Shown here piece after piece: positions 33,336 to 54,126 of a stretch of 64,000 nucleotides of DNA. Source of the stretch: Bacillus subtilis subsp. subtilis str. 168 (lineage in GTDB: Bacteria > Bacillota > Bacilli > Bacillales > Bacillaceae). The notes beneath the pieces were generated by a model, which searched no databases, was not told the origin of the DNA, and saw only the letters and a program-made list of their open reading frames with translations. The stretch covers positions 496,001 through 560,000 of the forward strand of contig NC_000964.3 in NCBI RefSeq assembly GCF_000009045.1. Direction: 5' to 3'. The position numbers and the translations under genes are program-made. The number at the start of each line of letters is the position of its first letter. Within the stretch, counting starts at the first letter, position 1.

Positions 33336-33421
<86 letters not shown>

Positions 33422-33459: not shown

Positions 33460-33504
33460 GTGTTTATTTTCAAATGATTTACTGCCCACAAACTGCCCAC
33501 TTAC

Positions 33505-34611
33505 CTAAAGTAAGTCATCTAATTTATCAGCCATTTCCTTTTGCTTGTTTGGATATAGGTGTCCATAAACATCAATTGTTGTTTTTACAGAACCATGTCC
33601 TAAACGCTCTTTAATTGTTATGTAATCTTCTCCTTGGTGTATTAATAGTGCAACGTGTGAATGTCTAAAATCATGTAAACGTATAGGAGTAAGATCGCTA
33701 TCCTTGCAAAAGTATTTAATTTTCCGACTGAAAATATCTTTTCTTGAAGGTGTATCTTTATATTGAAAGATATAGGTATCATGTGAATGTCTAATACCTA
33801 ATTCATTAAACAACTCTTCTTGTGCTTCTTTCCAACGTTCTAGTAGCTTAAGCAATTTTTTATTGATGCTAACTCGCCGAATCGAATTTTTAGTTTTTGG
33901 AGTAGTAACAACAAATTGACCATCAAGCCAGGTGCACGATTTATGCACATCTATTTCTAATAAGATTTTGTCAATATCTTTCCATTGCAGGGCGAGCATT
34001 TCACCACATCTTAGTCCAGTTAAAAAAGCAACAGTGTAAAAGGTTTTAAACAATAATTGATCTTGAGGAATTAAACTAATAAATTTTTTGAATTCTTCTG
34101 GTCTCCAAAACTTCATTTTCTTTCTTGTTAAAGGTAATCGTTTAACGTTGTCACACGGATTTCTTTTTAAGATTTCTTCATGTACAGCTGTATCAAAAAT
34201 TTTGCTTAGACTAGTCATTATATTATTAACCGATTTATTGCTTAGACCTGTTTCCATTAAATGTTTTCTGAAATCAGTTATTTCTCTATGTGTGATTTTT
34301 TGTATATCAGATTTCAAAAAGTAATCAGATATATGTTTGTTTATAATGTACTTCTGATTCTGATAATAGTTTGGTTTACTATCTATTTCACAACTTGCTA
34401 AATAAATTGAAATTAGAGTCGGAAAGCTTACTGATCTGGACTTTCTTGCTCTTTCTTCTTGAAATTCTCTTCTTAATTTTGCTTCTAATTCTAAAGCCTC
34501 TTTTCTGGTTGATGCTACTGGTCTCGTCCTAATTCTTTCTCCAGTAATCGGGTCAAATCCAAAGCTAACGTCAACTTGATATTGACCATTTTCAAGTTTT
34601 TTTACAGACAT
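33505..34611 (-). CDS. int: Tyrosine recombinase integrase
   Basis: TGLRCGE, HDFRHS, LGH and VYGH catalytic motifs; corresponds to ydcL. Confidence 0.97.
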   Translation of the reverse strand: MSVKKLENGQYQVDVSFGFDPITGERIRTRPVASTRKEALELEAKLRREFQEERARKSRSVSFPTLISIYLASCEIDSKPNYYQNQKYIINKHISDYFLKSDIQKITHREITDFRKHLMETGLSNKSVNNIMTSLSKIFDTAVHEEILKRNPCDNVKRLPLTRKKMKFWRPEEFKKFISLIPQDQLLFKTFYTVAFLTGLRCGEMLALQWKDIDKILLEIDVHKSCTWLDGQFVVTTPKTKNSIRRVSINKKLLKLLERWKEAQEELFNELGIRHSHDTYIFQYKDTPSRKDIFSRKIKYFCKDSDLTPIRLHDFRHSHVALLIHQGEDYITIKERLGHGSVKTTIDVYGHLYPNKQKEMADKLDDLL

Positions 34612-40065: not shown

Positions 40066-40095
40066 GAAACCCAAGAACTAACTTGGAGGGATAAG

Positions 40096-40365
40096 ATGCA
40101 TAATGTCAATCTGTTGAATCAGGCTGGACTGGAAAATGCTTTGGAATCAGTTGGCTGTTTAGATATTGTAGAAGATTTAATAGAAAAGATGCAGGAATAT
40201 GTTTTGTATCATACCGAAACTGCCGAAAGATTTGCGATTGATATCTTTACAGTAGTAAACAACTACACTAAAAAGGTTCATGCGATATTTAATGTTCTTG
40301 AAAATGAAGACGGTGAGACAAATGTTAAAAATGTAGAATTTGAAGTAATGCATTTTACGGAGTAA
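40096..40365 (+). CDS. ydcS: Hypothetical protein, paralogue of YdcT
   Basis: 89 aa; GGAGGG RBS. Confidence 0.82.
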   Translation: MHNVNLLNQAGLENALESVGCLDIVEDLIEKMQEYVLYHTETAERFAIDIFTVVNNYTKKVHAIFNVLENEDGETNVKNVEFEVMHFTE

Positions 40366-40403
40366 GGACAATTTTCCTTATGACTTTAAAGGGGGAACAT
40401 CAG

Positions 40404-40670
40404 GTGTTTAATATTAATCTGTTGAATCAGGCCCGACTTGAGAGTGATTTGGATTCCCTTGGGTGTTTGGATATTGCTGAGGAACTGATTGAAAAAATGA
40501 TGGAAGATGTTTTTTACAGTGATGTAGCTCAAAGAATCATTGTTCAAACACTTGCTGTTATAAATAACGCCAATGCAAAACTTCAAGCTACGTTTAACAT
40601 CTTAGAAGATGAAGATATGGAGACAGACGAACGAAGCGTGGAGTTTGAAGGAATTAGCTACTACGAATAA
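40404..40670 (+). CDS. ydcT: RecA/SOS modulator RamT
   Basis: 88 aa; GTG start after GGGGG. The functional name is from literature recall. Confidence 0.8.
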   Translation: MFNINLLNQARLESDLDSLGCLDIAEELIEKMMEDVFYSDVAQRIIVQTLAVINNANAKLQATFNILEDEDMETDERSVEFEGISYYE

Positions 40671-42321: not shown

Positions 42322-42846
42322 ATGGGGCGTCTGGTGTTCAACTACCGGAAGGCAATGAGAGAGCCGAAAAAAATCCAACAATTAACCGAAAATTATTCGT
42401 TACCCTTTGCAGTTGAGTTAATACCGGCTATTAACTATTTCATTTTTGTTGGCTTATGCTTTGGATTCTGGTACGGCGTGAGGATGATTTTCCCTCACGC
42501 TTTTGATAACAGTTACGTCATTGTGATTTTTGGGATACCATTTTTTTTAACGATGCTTGTAACGAAAATAAAGCCGGAAGGCAAAAACATCTATATATAT
42601 TTCTTTGATTTCGCAAAGTATTACTTCTTCATCAAGCTTCCACAAAAGAAGTATTGCAATGATCGAAAGATTGATTTAAGTAACGAAAAACAAATTGAGT
42701 TTCGAAAACTTGTGAAGGTGGTGGATTATTCAAATGAGACTAAAAACGCCTATGAAGGCAATACACAAGAATTTGCTGTTAACAAGAACGGGCGACGTGT
42801 GGGCGTACTACCGAATAAAAAGCAATTCGATTCCTATGCAAAATAA
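42322..42846 (+). CDS. conD: VirB3/TcpE-like conjugation protein
   Basis: Two TM segments and a KPEGK motif; overlaps conE. Confidence 0.87.
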   Translation: MGRLVFNYRKAMREPKKIQQLTENYSLPFAVELIPAINYFIFVGLCFGFWYGVRMIFPHAFDNSYVIVIFGIPFFLTMLVTKIKPEGKNIYIYFFDFAKYYFFIKLPQKKYCNDRKIDLSNEKQIEFRKLVKVVDYSNETKNAYEGNTQEFAVNKNGRRVGVLPNKKQFDSYAK

Positions 42847-45229
42847 AGAAAAAGTTGAATCGTATAAAAAGAAGTGGCAGCATCTTTTTGAAGAAATTAC
42901 ATCTTATGAGGATTTTCACTTGATGATGTATCCAAGTGAGTATGAATTAGAAAAACGATTTAAGGATTTAGAAACAGATATTGCGGCAGATGCAATGGAT
43001 GTGGCACGTTACTACAATGAAGAAACCGTAAGGCTGTTAGAACAGCGATTAGGAAGGCTGACAAAGTACGACTTCATTTTAGGTGTAAAACTGAAAAGCA
43101 GTCTTGTAAATATTAGTGTCGAACTTAAAGACAATATACTATCTTTTTTCAATACAGCGACTGATACAGTCGTGAAAATGCTCGGGTGGGAACAAAATGT
43201 TTCCACCTCTTTTTTTGAAAAATATGAGGAAGTCGAAGAAACACTAGCGAATATCATGGCTTCTGTTCGCGGAGAACGGCTTTCAGAAACAGAAATGACA
43301 TACATTAACCGTTATCACTTTGTACGTGGGTTAAAGCACCAAACGAATGAAGAAAGTGAGATAAAGGATGTTCGCTCTATTACAAACACGATCATAGACC
43401 CCACTGACCCATCAGTATTGCATTTGCATAGTGATCAAGATGAAGGCTATTCAGCTTTTGTCGTGATTGACGAATTTCTTCACAATATGTCGGAAAGTGA
43501 TTTGTTTTATGAAGCACAGTCTCTTCCCTTCCCTGTTGAAGTTCAGATGAAAATTCAAACGGAATCAAAGTCCATTACCAAGCCTGCCCTCAACCTCAAA
43601 AGACAGCAATTGAAAGAAGAACAAAAAGAACAACAAAGCACAGGCGATCGAAGTGATGTTTCCACTGTCACAAGTGCCACAATGATAAGGCATTTACAAG
43701 ATGAAATAAAGAAAGAAGATGTGCATGTGATGAACTGGCTGTCGGTGATAGTCGTTCATGGAAAGACAAAAAAAGAATGTGTGGGAAAAGCAACGATTGT
43801 CAAAAGGCATTTAAAAGGCGCTGGCATTACTTGTCGGCTTCCGGTGGCTGATCAATTGAACCTTTTTTATAAAATGCTTCCTGGTGAAAAGTTAGACATA
43901 ACCGATAAGAACTGGATTCAAAAAACAACGCAAGACGGTGTGGCTGAAAGTCTGTTTGCTGTTAACTCTGATATTGGTTCGAAAATCGGGTTCTTTCTCG
44001 GTTGGGTTGATCGTTTCCAAGAGCACACCGACTTAGAAAGTGCCATTATGTCCAGCCGTGATTTTGTCTTATTCCACCCTTTCTTAGCGAATCAGCAGTT
44101 AAAAGGTTCAAAGACACGTTCTCCTCACTGCTTAATCACAGGAGACACAGGAAACGGCAAGTCATATCTAGCGAAATTGATCTTTAACTATATCAGCATG
44201 TTAAACATCAAATCTCTGTATATAGACCCTAAAAAGGAAATGAGAAAGTGGATTCAAAGAGTCTTGAATGATGAGTACATTAGAGAGAACTTTCCCTTAT
44301 ATATTGCACATTTAGAGAAATACAACTATATCACGCTAGATCATGAAAACACGCACAACTGGGGAGCGCTTGACCCTATCTCCTTCCTCCCTCCTATGAA
44401 AGCAAAAGAGCTAGTTCAAGTCATTTTTGAACAAGTATATGACTTTAAAGGGAAGGACGACATAAACACAGCTTTCCTTCGTGCTACGTCAGAAGTGATT
44501 GATGCGAAACAAAAAGGTGAACAGGTCGGCTCACTTGATATTATTCGGAAGATGCAGAGCCATCCCGAAGAAGCTGTACAAAAAGCTGGTGACTATTTAA
44601 ATGAGGTCGTGTCAGATTCCATTTTGAAACTTTGTATTCATGATGGTTCAAATCCTGCATTGTCACTAGAAAAGCGAATTACCATTTTAGAAGTTGAAAA
44701 TATGGATTTGCCGGATCATGCTGAGCGACTTGAAAACTACACGATATCACAACTAAAGTCTAGTGCGGTCATGTTTGCACTAGGTAAGTTCTGCGAGCTA
44801 TTCGGCATGAATCAAGACGAACAGACTGTTGAATTTATAGATGAAGCTTGGATATTCACCACGTCACAACAAGGAAAAAAAGTAGAAAGACAAATGCGCC
44901 GGATTGGTCGCTCATACAACAATGCGGAATACTTCATTTCTCAATCCACAAAAGACGCTTTAAAAGAAGAGGATTCTGGAAACTTTGGCGTTGCCTTTGC
45001 TTTTGACGAACCAAACGAGCGTGAAGAAGTGTTGAAATGGATGAACATGGAGGTCACAAAAGATAACAAAAAAATGATGGAATCCATGTTTCAAGGTCAA
45101 TGCTTATTTAAAGATTACTATGGCCGCACCTCTAAAATTTCGATTGAATGCCTATTCGAAGAATGGCAAGGTGCTCTGAAAACAGTTGAGAAAAAAGCCG
45201 TCGCATATGCGGAAGAAAAATATTTGTAA
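42734..45229 (+). CDS. conE: VirB4-like ATPase
   Basis: TGDTGNGKS Walker A and FIDEAW Walker B. Confidence 0.94.
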   Translation: MRLKTPMKAIHKNLLLTRTGDVWAYYRIKSNSIPMQNKEKVESYKKKWQHLFEEITSYEDFHLMMYPSEYELEKRFKDLETDIAADAMDVARYYNEETVRLLEQRLGRLTKYDFILGVKLKSSLVNISVELKDNILSFFNTATDTVVKMLGWEQNVSTSFFEKYEEVEETLANIMASVRGERLSETEMTYINRYHFVRGLKHQTNEESEIKDVRSITNTIIDPTDPSVLHLHSDQDEGYSAFVVIDEFLHNMSESDLFYEAQSLPFPVEVQMKIQTESKSITKPALNLKRQQLKEEQKEQQSTGDRSDVSTVTSATMIRHLQDEIKKEDVHVMNWLSVIVVHGKTKKECVGKATIVKRHLKGAGITCRLPVADQLNLFYKMLPGEKLDITDKNWIQKTTQDGVAESLFAVNSDIGSKIGFFLGWVDRFQEHTDLESAIMSSRDFVLFHPFLANQQLKGSKTRSPHCLITGDTGNGKSYLAKLIFNYISMLNIKSLYIDPKKEMRKWIQRVLNDEYIRENFPLYIAHLEKYNYITLDHENTHNWGALDPISFLPPMKAKELVQVIFEQVYDFKGKDDINTAFLRATSEVIDAKQKGEQVGSLDIIRKMQSHPEEAVQKAGDYLNEVVSDSILKLCIHDGSNPALSLEKRITILEVENMDLPDHAERLENYTISQLKSSAVMFALGKFCELFGMNQDEQTVEFIDEAWIFTTSQQGKKVERQMRRIGRSYNNAEYFISQSTKDALKEEDSGNFGVAFAFDEPNEREEVLKWMNMEVTKDNKKMMESMFQGQCLFKDYYGRTSKISIECLFEEWQGALKTVEKKAVAYAEEKYL

Positions 45230-45247
45230 AAAGGGGTTGAATCGTAC

Positions 45248-45574
45248 ATGGAAATAGCTTTCTTAAACTCTCTTGTTGTCACGAGTCCAGGCTTTTATAA
45301 AGCTGAGAAAATCACATTGGACGAAGTTAAACAATGGCTGAAGCATTATGATGGTCGATACAAAAGTTTTATCGGACATAAATCAACGGCACAGTTTCTG
45401 CAAAAATTATTAGGTATCAGAATTGAGCAAAATCGAAAGACTTTCAGACATATGAAATATCAAAAAGCAATCTGTTTCTCTCTGTATGAACGATATCCTG
45501 AAAACGTGTTGCTAACGCAAAGAGACTTAGAGAAAGCCAGATACCAATTTTATTTATTAACTCGGTTAGATTAG
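45248..45574 (+). CDS. yddF: DUF1874 / AcrIII-1 family cyclic tetra-adenylate ring nuclease
   Basis: SFIGH motif; H44, R63, R82 and E85 are spaced like the AcrIII-1 catalytic residues. Confidence 0.88.
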   Translation: MEIAFLNSLVVTSPGFYKAEKITLDEVKQWLKHYDGRYKSFIGHKSTAQFLQKLLGIRIEQNRKTFRHMKYQKAICFSLYERYPENVLLTQRDLEKARYQFYLLTRLD

Positions 45575-45586
45575 GAGGTGGTTGTA

Positions 45587-48025
45587 ATGAAAAAGAAAAG
45601 AATTTTGATTGTGTCGGCTATTGTGTTGCTGTTTTTAACTGTTGCTTCAGCTGTAACGGTATTTTCGGCTGATGGAGATACAACGACGCAGCCAAAAGTC
45701 GAAAAAGCTGGCGGCGTGGAATTGAAGGTGAAAAGGTTTCCAATCTCACGCTATCAAGCGAATAATGAAGCATCTGACGATTTAATCAAGGGGGCGTTTG
45801 TTGGGCTGACAAACGTCACTTTTTCTTTTGCGGGAAACATTGTCCGTGTGGTTGATACGGGGATGGATATTTTGTATAACTTGCAACCGATTGACGAGTT
45901 CGCAAATTCTATTACAAACGTCTCTAAAACAGTTTATAAAACACTGAAAAAGAATTTCGGTGAAGCTTTATTTATTTTCACGTGCGCCTATGTTGTCTAC
46001 CTATTCTGTGTGAGAGGTAGCGTAAAAGAAGCAATGCGGCGGAGTATTCTATTTATTTGTGTCATGGTGATCGGTGGGCTTTGGATGTCGAACGCTGGTT
46101 ATTACATGAAAGTATTGAATGCCTTGTCTGTAGAAGCTCAAGGAAAGCTTTTAACTGCGGGGAATGGATTGGTTGGCATTGTTCAAGATGAAGGCAATTT
46201 TGCAGACAGTTCAGCGATTGAAAAAGGAAAAGAAATGGAAGGCACAGTTGCGGTTATGCGTAATCTTTACTTTGACATTGCTTTGATGAAGCCTTTTTTA
46301 ATTGTGAATTTTGATGAAACAAGCGAAAAGAAAATCAATGAGGAAGATACAGATAAAGGCGGACTTAATCGTATAGATAAACTGCTTTCTTATAAGCTTT
46401 CAGAGGATGGAGAAAAAGATAAAAAAGATTATATAAAAGAGACTGAAATTGATGATTATAAAAATGAATCTATGACTTCTGGAAATGTGTTTAATCAGCT
46501 GGGAGAGTCTTTTATCGCTGTGGTCGCTTCTATTGTCATTGGGATACCATTTTTAGCATTAGCGTTCTTTAATTTCTTGCTTCAAGTTGTCGCTTTAGTG
46601 ATAGTTTTCTTTGTGCCATTTGCTTTCATCTTAGCGTATGTTCCTCAATTAGCTTATTCGGGATTTGTTACGCTTGGACGCTTGGGGAGTGTTTACCTAC
46701 TGAAAGCAATGTTAGGGGTTATCGTTCTGTTTGTGTACGTGACTTGTTTTATTGTTGACAAGTTAATACCGCCAAATGGTTTTGGAATGTATCTTTTAAA
46801 TGTTGCTGTCCTTGCTTCAATCTTGTGGATTGGTTTTCACAAGAGGGATGCCATTATCAAGTTTGTGACTGCTGGAAAAGTTGTTTCAGTTGATAATAAT
46901 ATGATGGAAAACATGAGACAAAACATTGTTCAGCCTGCTTGGGAACAAGCGAAGAAAATAGGTGGAGTATGGGGTAACGGAGGCGGCGTATTTACTGACT
47001 TTACAAAGCATTTTGGGGGAAGAAAAGACGGTTCGAATGCTGATGGCGTAACTGGTGCTCCAAGTGGTGGCGGTAATTCACCGAGTGGGACTGCTATGGG
47101 ATATGATAATACTCATGCTATTTCAAGAACCCCGCAAAAAGAAACAGCTAACGGAATAGCTAATCATAACAGTCGAAGCTTAAAACGCAATCCTCAAACT
47201 CTATCGAAAGAACAAGAAAAGCAAAAACAAAAAGAAGCCTTTGCAAATGCAAAAGAAAATAAACAGCAATCCCATTTAGCCAGATTGAGAAAAGACGGAA
47301 TAAACTCTCCTATGTTGAAAGATGCTTTGAATGAAGGGAATGAGGATTTATCCAAACGAGCACCTATCTTGCAGGATAAAAAAGATGAATCAGCACGAAC
47401 AGATCAAAAAGAATATGTGGAACAGCTTCTTAAACAGCCCAATAACCAGCAACAAACTGACGATGCATCATTACAGCATGAAGAAGAATCTACTTCTAAT
47501 CGTGCGCCTGTCTTACAAGAGAATGAAAAAGATACAGAACGTACTGATCAGAAAGCGTATATTTATGACGAACAAAATCAGAATCTTGAAACAGATCAGC
47601 AACAAGATTTTGAAGTCCAGAAAGATGATTCTGTTTCCAATAGTGAGCCTGTAGCACAAGAGAAAACAGCAGAAATCAAACGATCAGATCAAAAAGTCAT
47701 GATGAATCAACCTGAACCGCAGCTCGGTTTTGAAAGTCCTCAATCTACAAAAGTAGAAAATCAACCTATTGCCAATAACGAACGTAAAATCAGACCATCT
47801 GAACCCGCAAAAGTTCATTCAGATGGTATTCGTGTTGATGAAAAACAGGCTGTTGCTCCTGCTGAAAATAAGACTGTATCAAGAGAAAAACAGCCTTCAT
47901 CACAAACAATTAAACGGACTGAACAAAGCGTTAATTCATTTGACCAAGTGTCTTTGAATGAAATTGCAAGACGCTCTTCATCAAAAGTAGAAGATCGACT
48001 GAGAAGGGATGAAAGAACAAGATGA
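45587..48025 (+). CDS. conG: VirB6-like polytopic conjugation protein
   Basis: Several TM blocks and a long polar C-terminal tail. The ATG at 45587 fits the GGAGG RBS (in-frame GTG at 45578). Confidence 0.9.
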   Translation: MKKKRILIVSAIVLLFLTVASAVTVFSADGDTTTQPKVEKAGGVELKVKRFPISRYQANNEASDDLIKGAFVGLTNVTFSFAGNIVRVVDTGMDILYNLQPIDEFANSITNVSKTVYKTLKKNFGEALFIFTCAYVVYLFCVRGSVKEAMRRSILFICVMVIGGLWMSNAGYYMKVLNALSVEAQGKLLTAGNGLVGIVQDEGNFADSSAIEKGKEMEGTVAVMRNLYFDIALMKPFLIVNFDETSEKKINEEDTDKGGLNRIDKLLSYKLSEDGEKDKKDYIKETEIDDYKNESMTSGNVFNQLGESFIAVVASIVIGIPFLALAFFNFLLQVVALVIVFFVPFAFILAYVPQLAYSGFVTLGRLGSVYLLKAMLGVIVLFVYVTCFIVDKLIPPNGFGMYLLNVAVLASILWIGFHKRDAIIKFVTAGKVVSVDNNMMENMRQNIVQPAWEQAKKIGGVWGNGGGVFTDFTKHFGGRKDGSNADGVTGAPSGGGNSPSGTAMGYDNTHAISRTPQKETANGIANHNSRSLKRNPQTLSKEQEKQKQKEAFANAKENKQQSHLARLRKDGINSPMLKDALNEGNEDLSKRAPILQDKKDESARTDQKEYVEQLLKQPNNQQQTDDASLQHEEESTSNRAPVLQENEKDTERTDQKAYIYDEQNQNLETDQQQDFEVQKDDSVSNSEPVAQEKTAEIKRSDQKVMMNQPEPQLGFESPQSTKVENQPIANNERKIRPSEPAKVHSDGIRVDEKQAVAPAENKTVSREKQPSSQTIKRTEQSVNSFDQVSLNEIARRSSSKVEDRLRRDERTR

Positions 48026-50165: not shown

Positions 50166-50966
50166 TTATTTTAATTTCGTATTAAATTTAGCCTTTATCC
50201 TTTCCCATTTTTTATCTTCTAATGTGAGATCATACATACGGAGTATTTTTTCTTTTAAATTAAATAAGTCTATTGGTTCCTCCAAGGAGAATGCTTTTTT
50301 ATTTTTATCAATTACTCCTTTTATTTCGCCCTTAAAACCAGGGAGGATGAAAGTAGAGCAGTTATTGCTATTCACCCAAGTAGCCCCCATTTCATTAAGG
50401 CAGTATACGCTATCATAGTAATTATCGGATAACATATAAAAGACATATGCACCCTTAAAAAGATGTTTTTTTAGATATTCGAAAATATCTTCATCTCCAG
50501 GAATACCATGATAAGGTGAAGAAGTGTATATTATATCTTCAGAAGACACTCCTATATCCTCTAGTAATTCAACGAAAGCATTACATACAATTTTGTCTTT
50601 TGAGGAGTGGCTAATAAATATTTTTTTCTCTAATTCTCTATTTTGATCACTTGAAAAGTGAGTTATGCTGCTTTTTTCAGTCTCATCTACTACAGGCAAT
50701 TCATCTAAAAATTTTTTTATTTTATTTTCTGTTTCATGATGTTCAAACTCATTAAAAACAAATTCATTTTTATATATTTCATTGCGGTTTCGTGCATACC
50801 AAGTCTTAAGTTGTTCTAGTGAATAACGAATTAACTCAATATCATTTGATTCAAGAGATGTTCGAAATTGATCAATAATATTTGTGAGTACAGGCTCGCG
50901 AGAGTAATCTAGAAGTACTCCTATAATTCCATTAGCCTCAAATTTTAATTTTTTTAATGTGTCCAT
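50166..50966 (-). CDS. spbK: TIR-domain abortive-infection protein SpbK
   Basis: KKIFISHSSKD and YCLNEMGA TIR motifs; corresponds to yddK. Confidence 0.9.
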   Translation of the reverse strand: MDTLKKLKFEANGIIGVLLDYSREPVLTNIIDQFRTSLESNDIELIRYSLEQLKTWYARNRNEIYKNEFVFNEFEHHETENKIKKFLDELPVVDETEKSSITHFSSDQNRELEKKIFISHSSKDKIVCNAFVELLEDIGVSSEDIIYTSSPYHGIPGDEDIFEYLKKHLFKGAYVFYMLSDNYYDSVYCLNEMGATWVNSNNCSTFILPGFKGEIKGVIDKNKKAFSLEEPIDLFNLKEKILRMYDLTLEDKKWERIKAKFNTKLK

Positions 50967-53872: not shown

Positions 53873-53932
53873 CTAGGTTGAGGGCCTAGTGGGTGAATAA
53901 CCCGTGGAGGTTCAAGTCCTCTCGGCCGCATC
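53873..53932 (+). repeat. attR 60-bp direct repeat (3' fragment of tRNA-Leu2)
   Basis: Identical to 33362-33421. Confidence 0.96.
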
Positions 53933-53975: not shown

Positions 53976-54029
53976 GTGTGGAAAATACGGCTATGGGAGA
54001 AGACTTGCTCACCAAAACTCACCAGTTAC

Positions 54030-54126
54030 TTAAAGTAAGTCATCCAAACGGTCGGCGGTTCCTTCTGTTTATTAGGAAAAAGATATCCGTTCATTGTAAA
54101 AGAAACGAACCATGTCCTATTCGTTC
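54030..54126 (-). pseudogene. Integrase 3'-end remnant
   Basis: Frameshifted pieces ERIGHGS / GYLFPNKQKE / ADRLDDLL* match the Int C-terminus ERLGHGS / GHLYPNKQKE / ADKLDDLL*. Confidence 0.88.

Follow-up and report, generated by a model that had tools for sequence, protein, structure and literature searches.

The yddF gene of ICEBs1 encodes a DUF1874/AcrIII-1 cA4 ring nuclease carried as probable accessory cargo between conE and conG

The window analyzed here, a stretch of 64,000 nucleotides of the Bacillus subtilis strain 168 chromosome (NC_000964.3, positions 496001 to 560000), holds the yddF gene at positions 45248 to 45574 (plus strand, stop codon included). This 108-aa ORF, with an ATG start and a TAG stop, is supported by the ORF list, the PF08960 match, matches in the PDB, and a structure model. 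It is directly preceded by conE (42734 to 45229, plus strand), an 831-aa ORF for a VirB4-like ATPase (PF12846, AAA_10, E = 8e-140), and directly followed by conG (45587 to 48025, plus strand), encoding a polytopic membrane channel protein (NCBIfam NF046089, CD3337/EF1877 mobilome membrane protein, E = 6e-127). The spacer to conE is 18 nt and contains, as read from the sequence, a Shine-Dalgarno-like AAAGGGG (45230 to 45236, plus strand) lying 11 nt 5' of the yddF ATG. The spacer to conG is 12 nt, and the conG Shine-Dalgarno sequence GGAGG (45574 to 45578) shares bases with the yddF TAG stop; from Shine-Dalgarno spacing and orthologue alignment, conG probably starts at the ATG at 45587. Given these short spacers, and since a consensus scan found no promoter- or terminator-like site at either yddF boundary, yddF is probably cotranscribed with the genes of the type IV secretion system (T4SS). 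The initial annotation had described a 108-aa ORF between conE and conG with an SFIGH motif and residues H44, R63, R82, and E85, and every detail of it proved right against the ORF list and a scripted residue count, which puts SFIGH at residues 40 to 44 and adds N7, S8, S46, and T47.

The element around yddF is ICEBs1 of B. subtilis, identified by its tRNA-Leu, its 60-bp repeats, and its gene order. The left repeat, attL (33362 to 33421, plus strand), lies in the 3' end of tRNA-Leu(gag) (33336 to 33419), and the second copy, attR (53873 to 53932, plus strand), marks the right end; the two form a perfect 60-nt repeat pair with a spacing of 20,511. ICEBs1 thus measures 20,511 bp between repeats, at 529.4 to 549.9 kb of the genome, and its ends agree to within about 300 bp with those of Keller et al. 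2007 (PMC1796864), who placed yddF in an integrated element at 529066 to 549782 beside a leucine tRNA. The expected ICEBs1 gene order (int/immA/immR, nicK, conB to conE, conG, cwlT, spbK, and rapI) was found. The element carries an integrase, immA, immR, a coupling protein, a Rep_trans relaxase, conB, conE, conG, cwlT, yddJ (a DUF4467 lipoprotein), spbK, and rapI. The TIR-domain anti-phage gene spbK (yddK; 50166 to 50966, minus strand, opposite to yddF) was recognized by Pfam TIR_2 and by PADLOC (spbK, E = 5e-99), bearing out the earlier statement that one ICE carries both yddF and a defence gene. Two further repeats were observed in the window. A 33-nt direct repeat, 85% identical, has one copy just inside attL (33490 to 33522) and the other just outside attR (54015 to 54047), as would be expected if an older element at this tRNA had left remnants behind. 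The other, at 40091 to 40516, is a direct repeat of 118 nt (75% identity, spacing 308) and corresponds to the tandem paralogues ydcS and ydcT.

The family assignment of YddF is supported by sequence and fold. YddF matches Pfam PF08960 (STIV_B116-like, formerly DUF1874) with an E value of 1.2e-36 and 125.3 bits against a cut-off of 26, which is far beyond chance, and over the whole length of the profile (residues 3 to 100 on positions 1 to 100 of 101). This search, which the initial annotation had proposed, agrees with the PDB sequence matches (2j6b, 2j85, 2x4i, and 6scf, with AFV3-109 at E = 4.6e-11, STIV B116, SIRV1 gp29, and a Csx1-Crn2 fusion) and with Foldseek in placing YddF in the family claimed for it. 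The AF2 model, built from an alignment of eight orthologues (pLDDT 76.5, pTM 0.72), is a soluble enzyme fold of 108 aa without a membrane segment. Every Foldseek match of the model below E = 0.01 is a DUF1874 protein, including 6scf (AcrIII-1) and 8y7g (Crn2 with cA4), while the next matches stand at E ~0.1; 14 matches at E ≤ 0.001, all DUF1874, have TM scores of 0.67 to 0.78. The PADLOC Csx16 profile also matches YddF over its full length (E = 1.6e-10), and no NCBIfam model was found to match it.

The catalytic set is complete. HMMER aligned YddF residues 31 to 96 with residues 33 to 99 of the 2x4i chain (SIRV1 ORF114, that is gp29, 114 aa in native numbering) with a single gap before Y38, pairing H44 with H47, S46 with S49, T47 with T50, R63 with R66, R82 with R85, and E85 with E88, which confirms the three-position offset from AcrIII-1 noted earlier. 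The catalytic histidine of gp29, H47 in its GH motif, is H44 in the SFIGH of YddF, invariant in nine genus orthologues and in five homologues at 45 to 49% identity; R63, R82, and E85 are likewise present in 14 of 14 homologues. In gp29, H47 is the general acid, with an activity loss of >2500-fold in H47A, R66 is a ligand-binding residue, and R85 keeps the dimer locked in its closed form (10.1101/778746), while E88 holds the catalytic histidine (PMC11317161). Altogether, these observations support YddF as a DUF1874/AcrIII-1 member with a complete catalytic set.

Much of this is already in the literature. Keller et al. 2007 linked yddF to AFV3-109 (PMC1796864), and Athukoralage et al., in the 2019 preprint that gave the family the name AcrIII-1, found that YddF, purified as the ICEBs1 enzyme, converts cA4 to A2>P at 37°C, with assay concentrations expressed as dimer (10.1101/778746). 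The gene studied there is the same, without any difference in sequence. The earlier statement that YddF had been reported as an active cA4-degrading member is confirmed. Since cA4 cleavage by purified YddF was already published, identifying the gene, the family to which it belongs, and what the enzyme does is a correct rediscovery and not a new finding. SIRV1 gp29 (6scf, 2x4i) shares the fold (TM 0.67 to 0.72), the H/R/R/E set offset by three, and the conversion of cA4 to two A2>P, but is only about 20% identical to YddF and belongs to a virus of archaea, not to a bacterial ICE; moreover, the anti-CRISPR activity of gp29 is known from heterologous or plasmid assays, whereas the published evidence on YddF is in vitro cA4 cleavage. 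No report of an in vivo anti-CRISPR effect of YddF was found in the literature searched. The best match in both sequence (E = 4.6e-11) and structure (Foldseek E = 7e-7, 29% identity) is AFV3-109 (2j6b), a protein of an archaeal lipothrixvirus. The domain of YddF is also that of Crn2 and the Csx1-Crn2 fusion (8y7f, 8y7g), in which H495 and E536 correspond to H47 and E88 of gp29 and to H44 and E85 of YddF, but they are encoded in type III loci as a host off-switch, whereas YddF stands alone, its gene lies on a mobile element, and its genome lacks type III. Csx16 is also a cA4-specific ring nuclease whose model resembles 2j6b, but it forms a separate CRISPR-linked family, and the match of its profile to YddF is far weaker than that of PF08960.

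The distribution of yddF was surveyed in 49 species representatives of the genus Bacillus and in a 401-genome sample of the order. Eight of the genus genomes have PF08960, at nine loci in total, each of them between conE and conG; the hosts include B. spizizenii, B. inaquosorum, B. glycinifermentans (two copies), B. rugosus, B. changyiensis, and B. haynesii. In the order sample, five genomes of another family carry a homologue 45 to 49% identical, in the order conE-yddF-conG and with H/R/R/E kept. Counting a frameshifted copy described below, 15 of the 16 PF08960 loci in the Bacilli samples occupy the same slot, the sole exception being a truncated 79-aa copy beside an aldehyde oxidoreductase. 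This slot is not always filled in the same way. In the related module of G048 the junction is empty and conG begins 7 nt past conE (L017:2976-2983), in that of G021 it is a 713-nt stretch without a long ORF (L049:11972-12686), and in that of G031 it holds a gene for a yddJ-like lipoprotein (L020:2976-3326); yddF is preceded by an additional membrane ORF of 94 aa in B. haynesii and in one of the two B. glycinifermentans copies (L016:3000-3627). Since related modules have conE and conG joined directly, separated by an ORF-less gap, or separated by another small gene, the conE-conG junction serves as a cargo slot of variable content, with yddF a probable accessory gene and not a core T4SS part.

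These data bear directly on the idea that YddF belongs to the ICEBs1 T4SS as a structural or assembly factor. Its location inside the T4SS gene block with tight spacing, and in the same slot at 15 loci, is what such a component would display, but a soluble enzyme fold without a membrane segment is not, and a core component should be present in every related conjugation module, whereas yddF is missing from G048, G021, and G031. Moreover, Leonetti et al. are said to have found in 2015 that conB, conC, conD, and conG are needed for transfer and that yddF is dispensable. We consider a T4SS role very improbable. Two degraded loci were observed in the survey. In G372, a genome of the other family, the yddF homologue in the conE-conG slot (L030:1477-1799) is split by a frameshift into two frames and is probably a pseudogene. 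In B. spizizenii G038 (L019/L024), conE has in-frame stops (one TAG and two TGA) beside an intact yddF that is 99% identical, and this ICE copy looks like a decaying one.

Comparison of the copies suggests that yddF is under strong purifying selection. Among unsaturated pairs of the nine genus copies, its dN/dS is 0.03 to 0.09, similar to that of conE and cwlT. In eight aligned orthologues, 62 of 108 columns are invariant, including N7, S8, H44, S46, T47, R63, R82, and E85, and the four residues H44, R63, R82, and E85 are unchanged in 9 of 9 genus copies. As a separate observation, yddF has a dS of about 0.8 when strain 168 is compared with the copies of B. glycinifermentans-A and B. rugosus (L051, L055), against 0.15 to 0.32 for the flanking conE and cwlT, which suggests a recombinational exchange of the yddF allele.

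We then considered which cyclic nucleotide systems the hosts contain. In the strain 168 genome, profile searches found no Cas1, Csm1, Cmr2, or SMODS domain, and no CRISPR array with the genus repeat was detected, in line with the earlier statement that the window holds no CRISPR array. Two CARF/Csx1-type Pfam models, one of them PF09651, also gave no match in this genome, and neither did SAVED (PF18145); the absences of PF18145 and PF09651 say little, because both models were silent in every control genome as well. Cas10 was found in 0 of the 13 intact-yddF host genomes examined. A Crn2-type housekeeping role, in which YddF would reset the type III response of its own host, a task that the cellular DUF1874 proteins known as Crn2 perform in a small number of type III loci, is therefore hard to accommodate: the strain 168 genome has neither Cas10, Cas1, nor a genus-repeat array, and yddF is ICE-borne and not CRISPR-linked. 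We regard this role as scarcely credible.

The genus is not devoid of type III systems, contrary to the initial annotation, which held this host lineage not to be known for them: type III-B loci occur in 3 of the 49 Bacillus species representatives. Genomes G004, G025, and G046 carry cmr2 and cmr3, the sole type III systems among these representatives, in cmr1-6 loci (L042:6602-13836, L040, and L041:6515-13824, respectively) in which a NucC gene comes first and CRISPR arrays flank the locus. In G046 the cmr1-6 operon is complete, with arrays on its flanks. Cmr2 keeps GGDD in all three genomes and lacks the HD domain in G046; G004 and G025 have no Cas1. In all three, the NucC gene lies directly upstream of cmr1 (PADLOC E = 4e-79; 91% identity among the three). 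The NucC of a Vibrio type III-B system with the same architecture is switched on by cA3 (PMC8682760), and the type III-B loci of the genus probably signal with cA3 too. Because of this coupling to NucC, and because DUF1874 enzymes are specific for cA4, YddF should by homology have no effect on the type III systems closest to ICEBs1. This point is the main caveat to the anti-CRISPR reading and is new here. It fits with published work in which DUF1874 blocked cA4-based but not cA6-based immunity, and with the comment, made by the group that assayed YddF, that Firmicutes typically use cA6.

CBASS, which the initial annotation had put forward as another possible target, finds no support: the strain 168 genome contains no SMODS domain, and the literature examined holds no link between CD-NTases and cA4. 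To our knowledge, no CBASS signals with cA4. We reject this candidate as unsupported, which is not to say disproved.

Spacers offered another view of the relation between CRISPR and these conjugation modules. The 134 unique spacers come from arrays with a shared 32-nt repeat, the one also found beside the cmr loci, in four Bacillus species (G004, G025, G036, and G046), and three of them match an ICEBs1-related conjugation module. A spacer of G046 in the array beside the cmr operon (L041:5952-5986) matches conE of the yddF-less module at L048:10146-10180, with 35/35 identities in G048 and 34/35 in G021; a spacer of G004 (starting at L042:4518) matches a T2SSE-ATPase gene of the G021 element (30/32; L049:4918-4949); and a spacer of G036 (starting at L045:1322) matches conG of the same element (30/33; L049:14893-14925, where the 5' flank is TTC). 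Each of the three has the antisense orientation relative to the operon mRNA. The targeted module, in G048 and G021, is without yddF, and no match to ICEBs1 or to the other eight copies with yddF was seen among the 134 spacers. It would be tempting to read this as protection by yddF, but we reject that argument, since the sample is small and clade cannot be separated from gene content in it. YdcI identity to strain 168 puts the yddF-less modules in one clade with the CRISPR hosts (74 to 77%), and the yddF-bearing copies in two others (96 to 98% and 80 to 82%); the spacer pattern is thus not evidence of protection.

We propose a model in which yddF is an accessory DUF1874 cA4 ring nuclease gene of ICEBs1, made together with the T4SS genes, whose product would blunt cA4-based immunity against the incoming ICE; we hold this to be likely. 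By analogy with solved relatives, and from the published YddF assay, (i) YddF would act as a homodimer whose two subunits enclose one molecule of cA4, (ii) H44 would serve as general acid while 2'-OH groups attack in line at two opposite phosphodiesters, with E85 on a mobile loop holding H44 and R63 and R82 binding and locking the ligand, and (iii) the products would be two linear A2>P, so that cA4-dependent effectors would no longer be activated. The timing would follow from transcription. If yddF and the T4SS genes share one long transcript from Pxis, then YddF would be made in every cell that transcribes the ICE, a fresh transconjugant included, alongside the very RNAs that a type III CRISPR system would detect. 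ICE transcription, needed for type III detection, would therefore produce YddF simultaneously, and cA4-based immunity against the incoming ICE would be blunted at that point. Protection of the ICE in recipients is plausible, although less obvious than the initial annotation assumed.

Another possibility is that YddF is kept for another job, either cutting a different cyclic oligonucleotide of an undescribed Bacillus system or acting through a protein partner. In favor of this, yddF is under strong purifying selection though no host has Cas10, the type III systems of the genus are of the NucC/cA3 type, and the strain 168 genome has no Cas10, CD-NTase, or CARF/Csx1-type match (SAVED and PF09651 being silent in controls too). 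There is also a precedent in a native context, as the homologue SIRV2 gp37 shows no anti-CRISPR activity in its native virus, owing to its late expression, and acts through a host methyltransferase partner, although YddF, unlike the late-expressed gp37, is probably coexpressed with the T4SS operon. However, the conserved residues are exactly those of cA4 binding and catalysis, cA4 cleavage is the only activity ever shown for YddF, and AcrIII-1 is without effect on a cyclic-dinucleotide system. Moreover, hosts without Cas10 are weak evidence, because an anti-defence gene is selected in recipients and not in its resident hosts. Altogether, we consider such another job unlikely. A broader form of the doubt, to which we give a minor but real chance, is that YddF is not aimed at any type III CRISPR met by ICEBs1-family elements, its true target being an undescribed cA4 or cyclic-oligoadenylate defence or signal of the Bacillales, or that it has a second, non-nuclease function. 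Room for this is left by the conservation of one slot under purifying selection in two Bacillales families, by the Cas10-less hosts, by the NucC/cA3 coupling in the genus, and by the many Firmicutes type III-A systems that use cA6.

Protection of the element against cA4 signaling in recipients remains the reading that we prefer. YddF is one of very few ring nucleases found on a conjugative element rather than on a virus, in a fixed slot, and the nearest type III systems use a signal molecule that YddF is not known to cut. As ICEBs1 is genetically tractable, it is well suited to asking whether ring nucleases help conjugative elements to cross CRISPR barriers.
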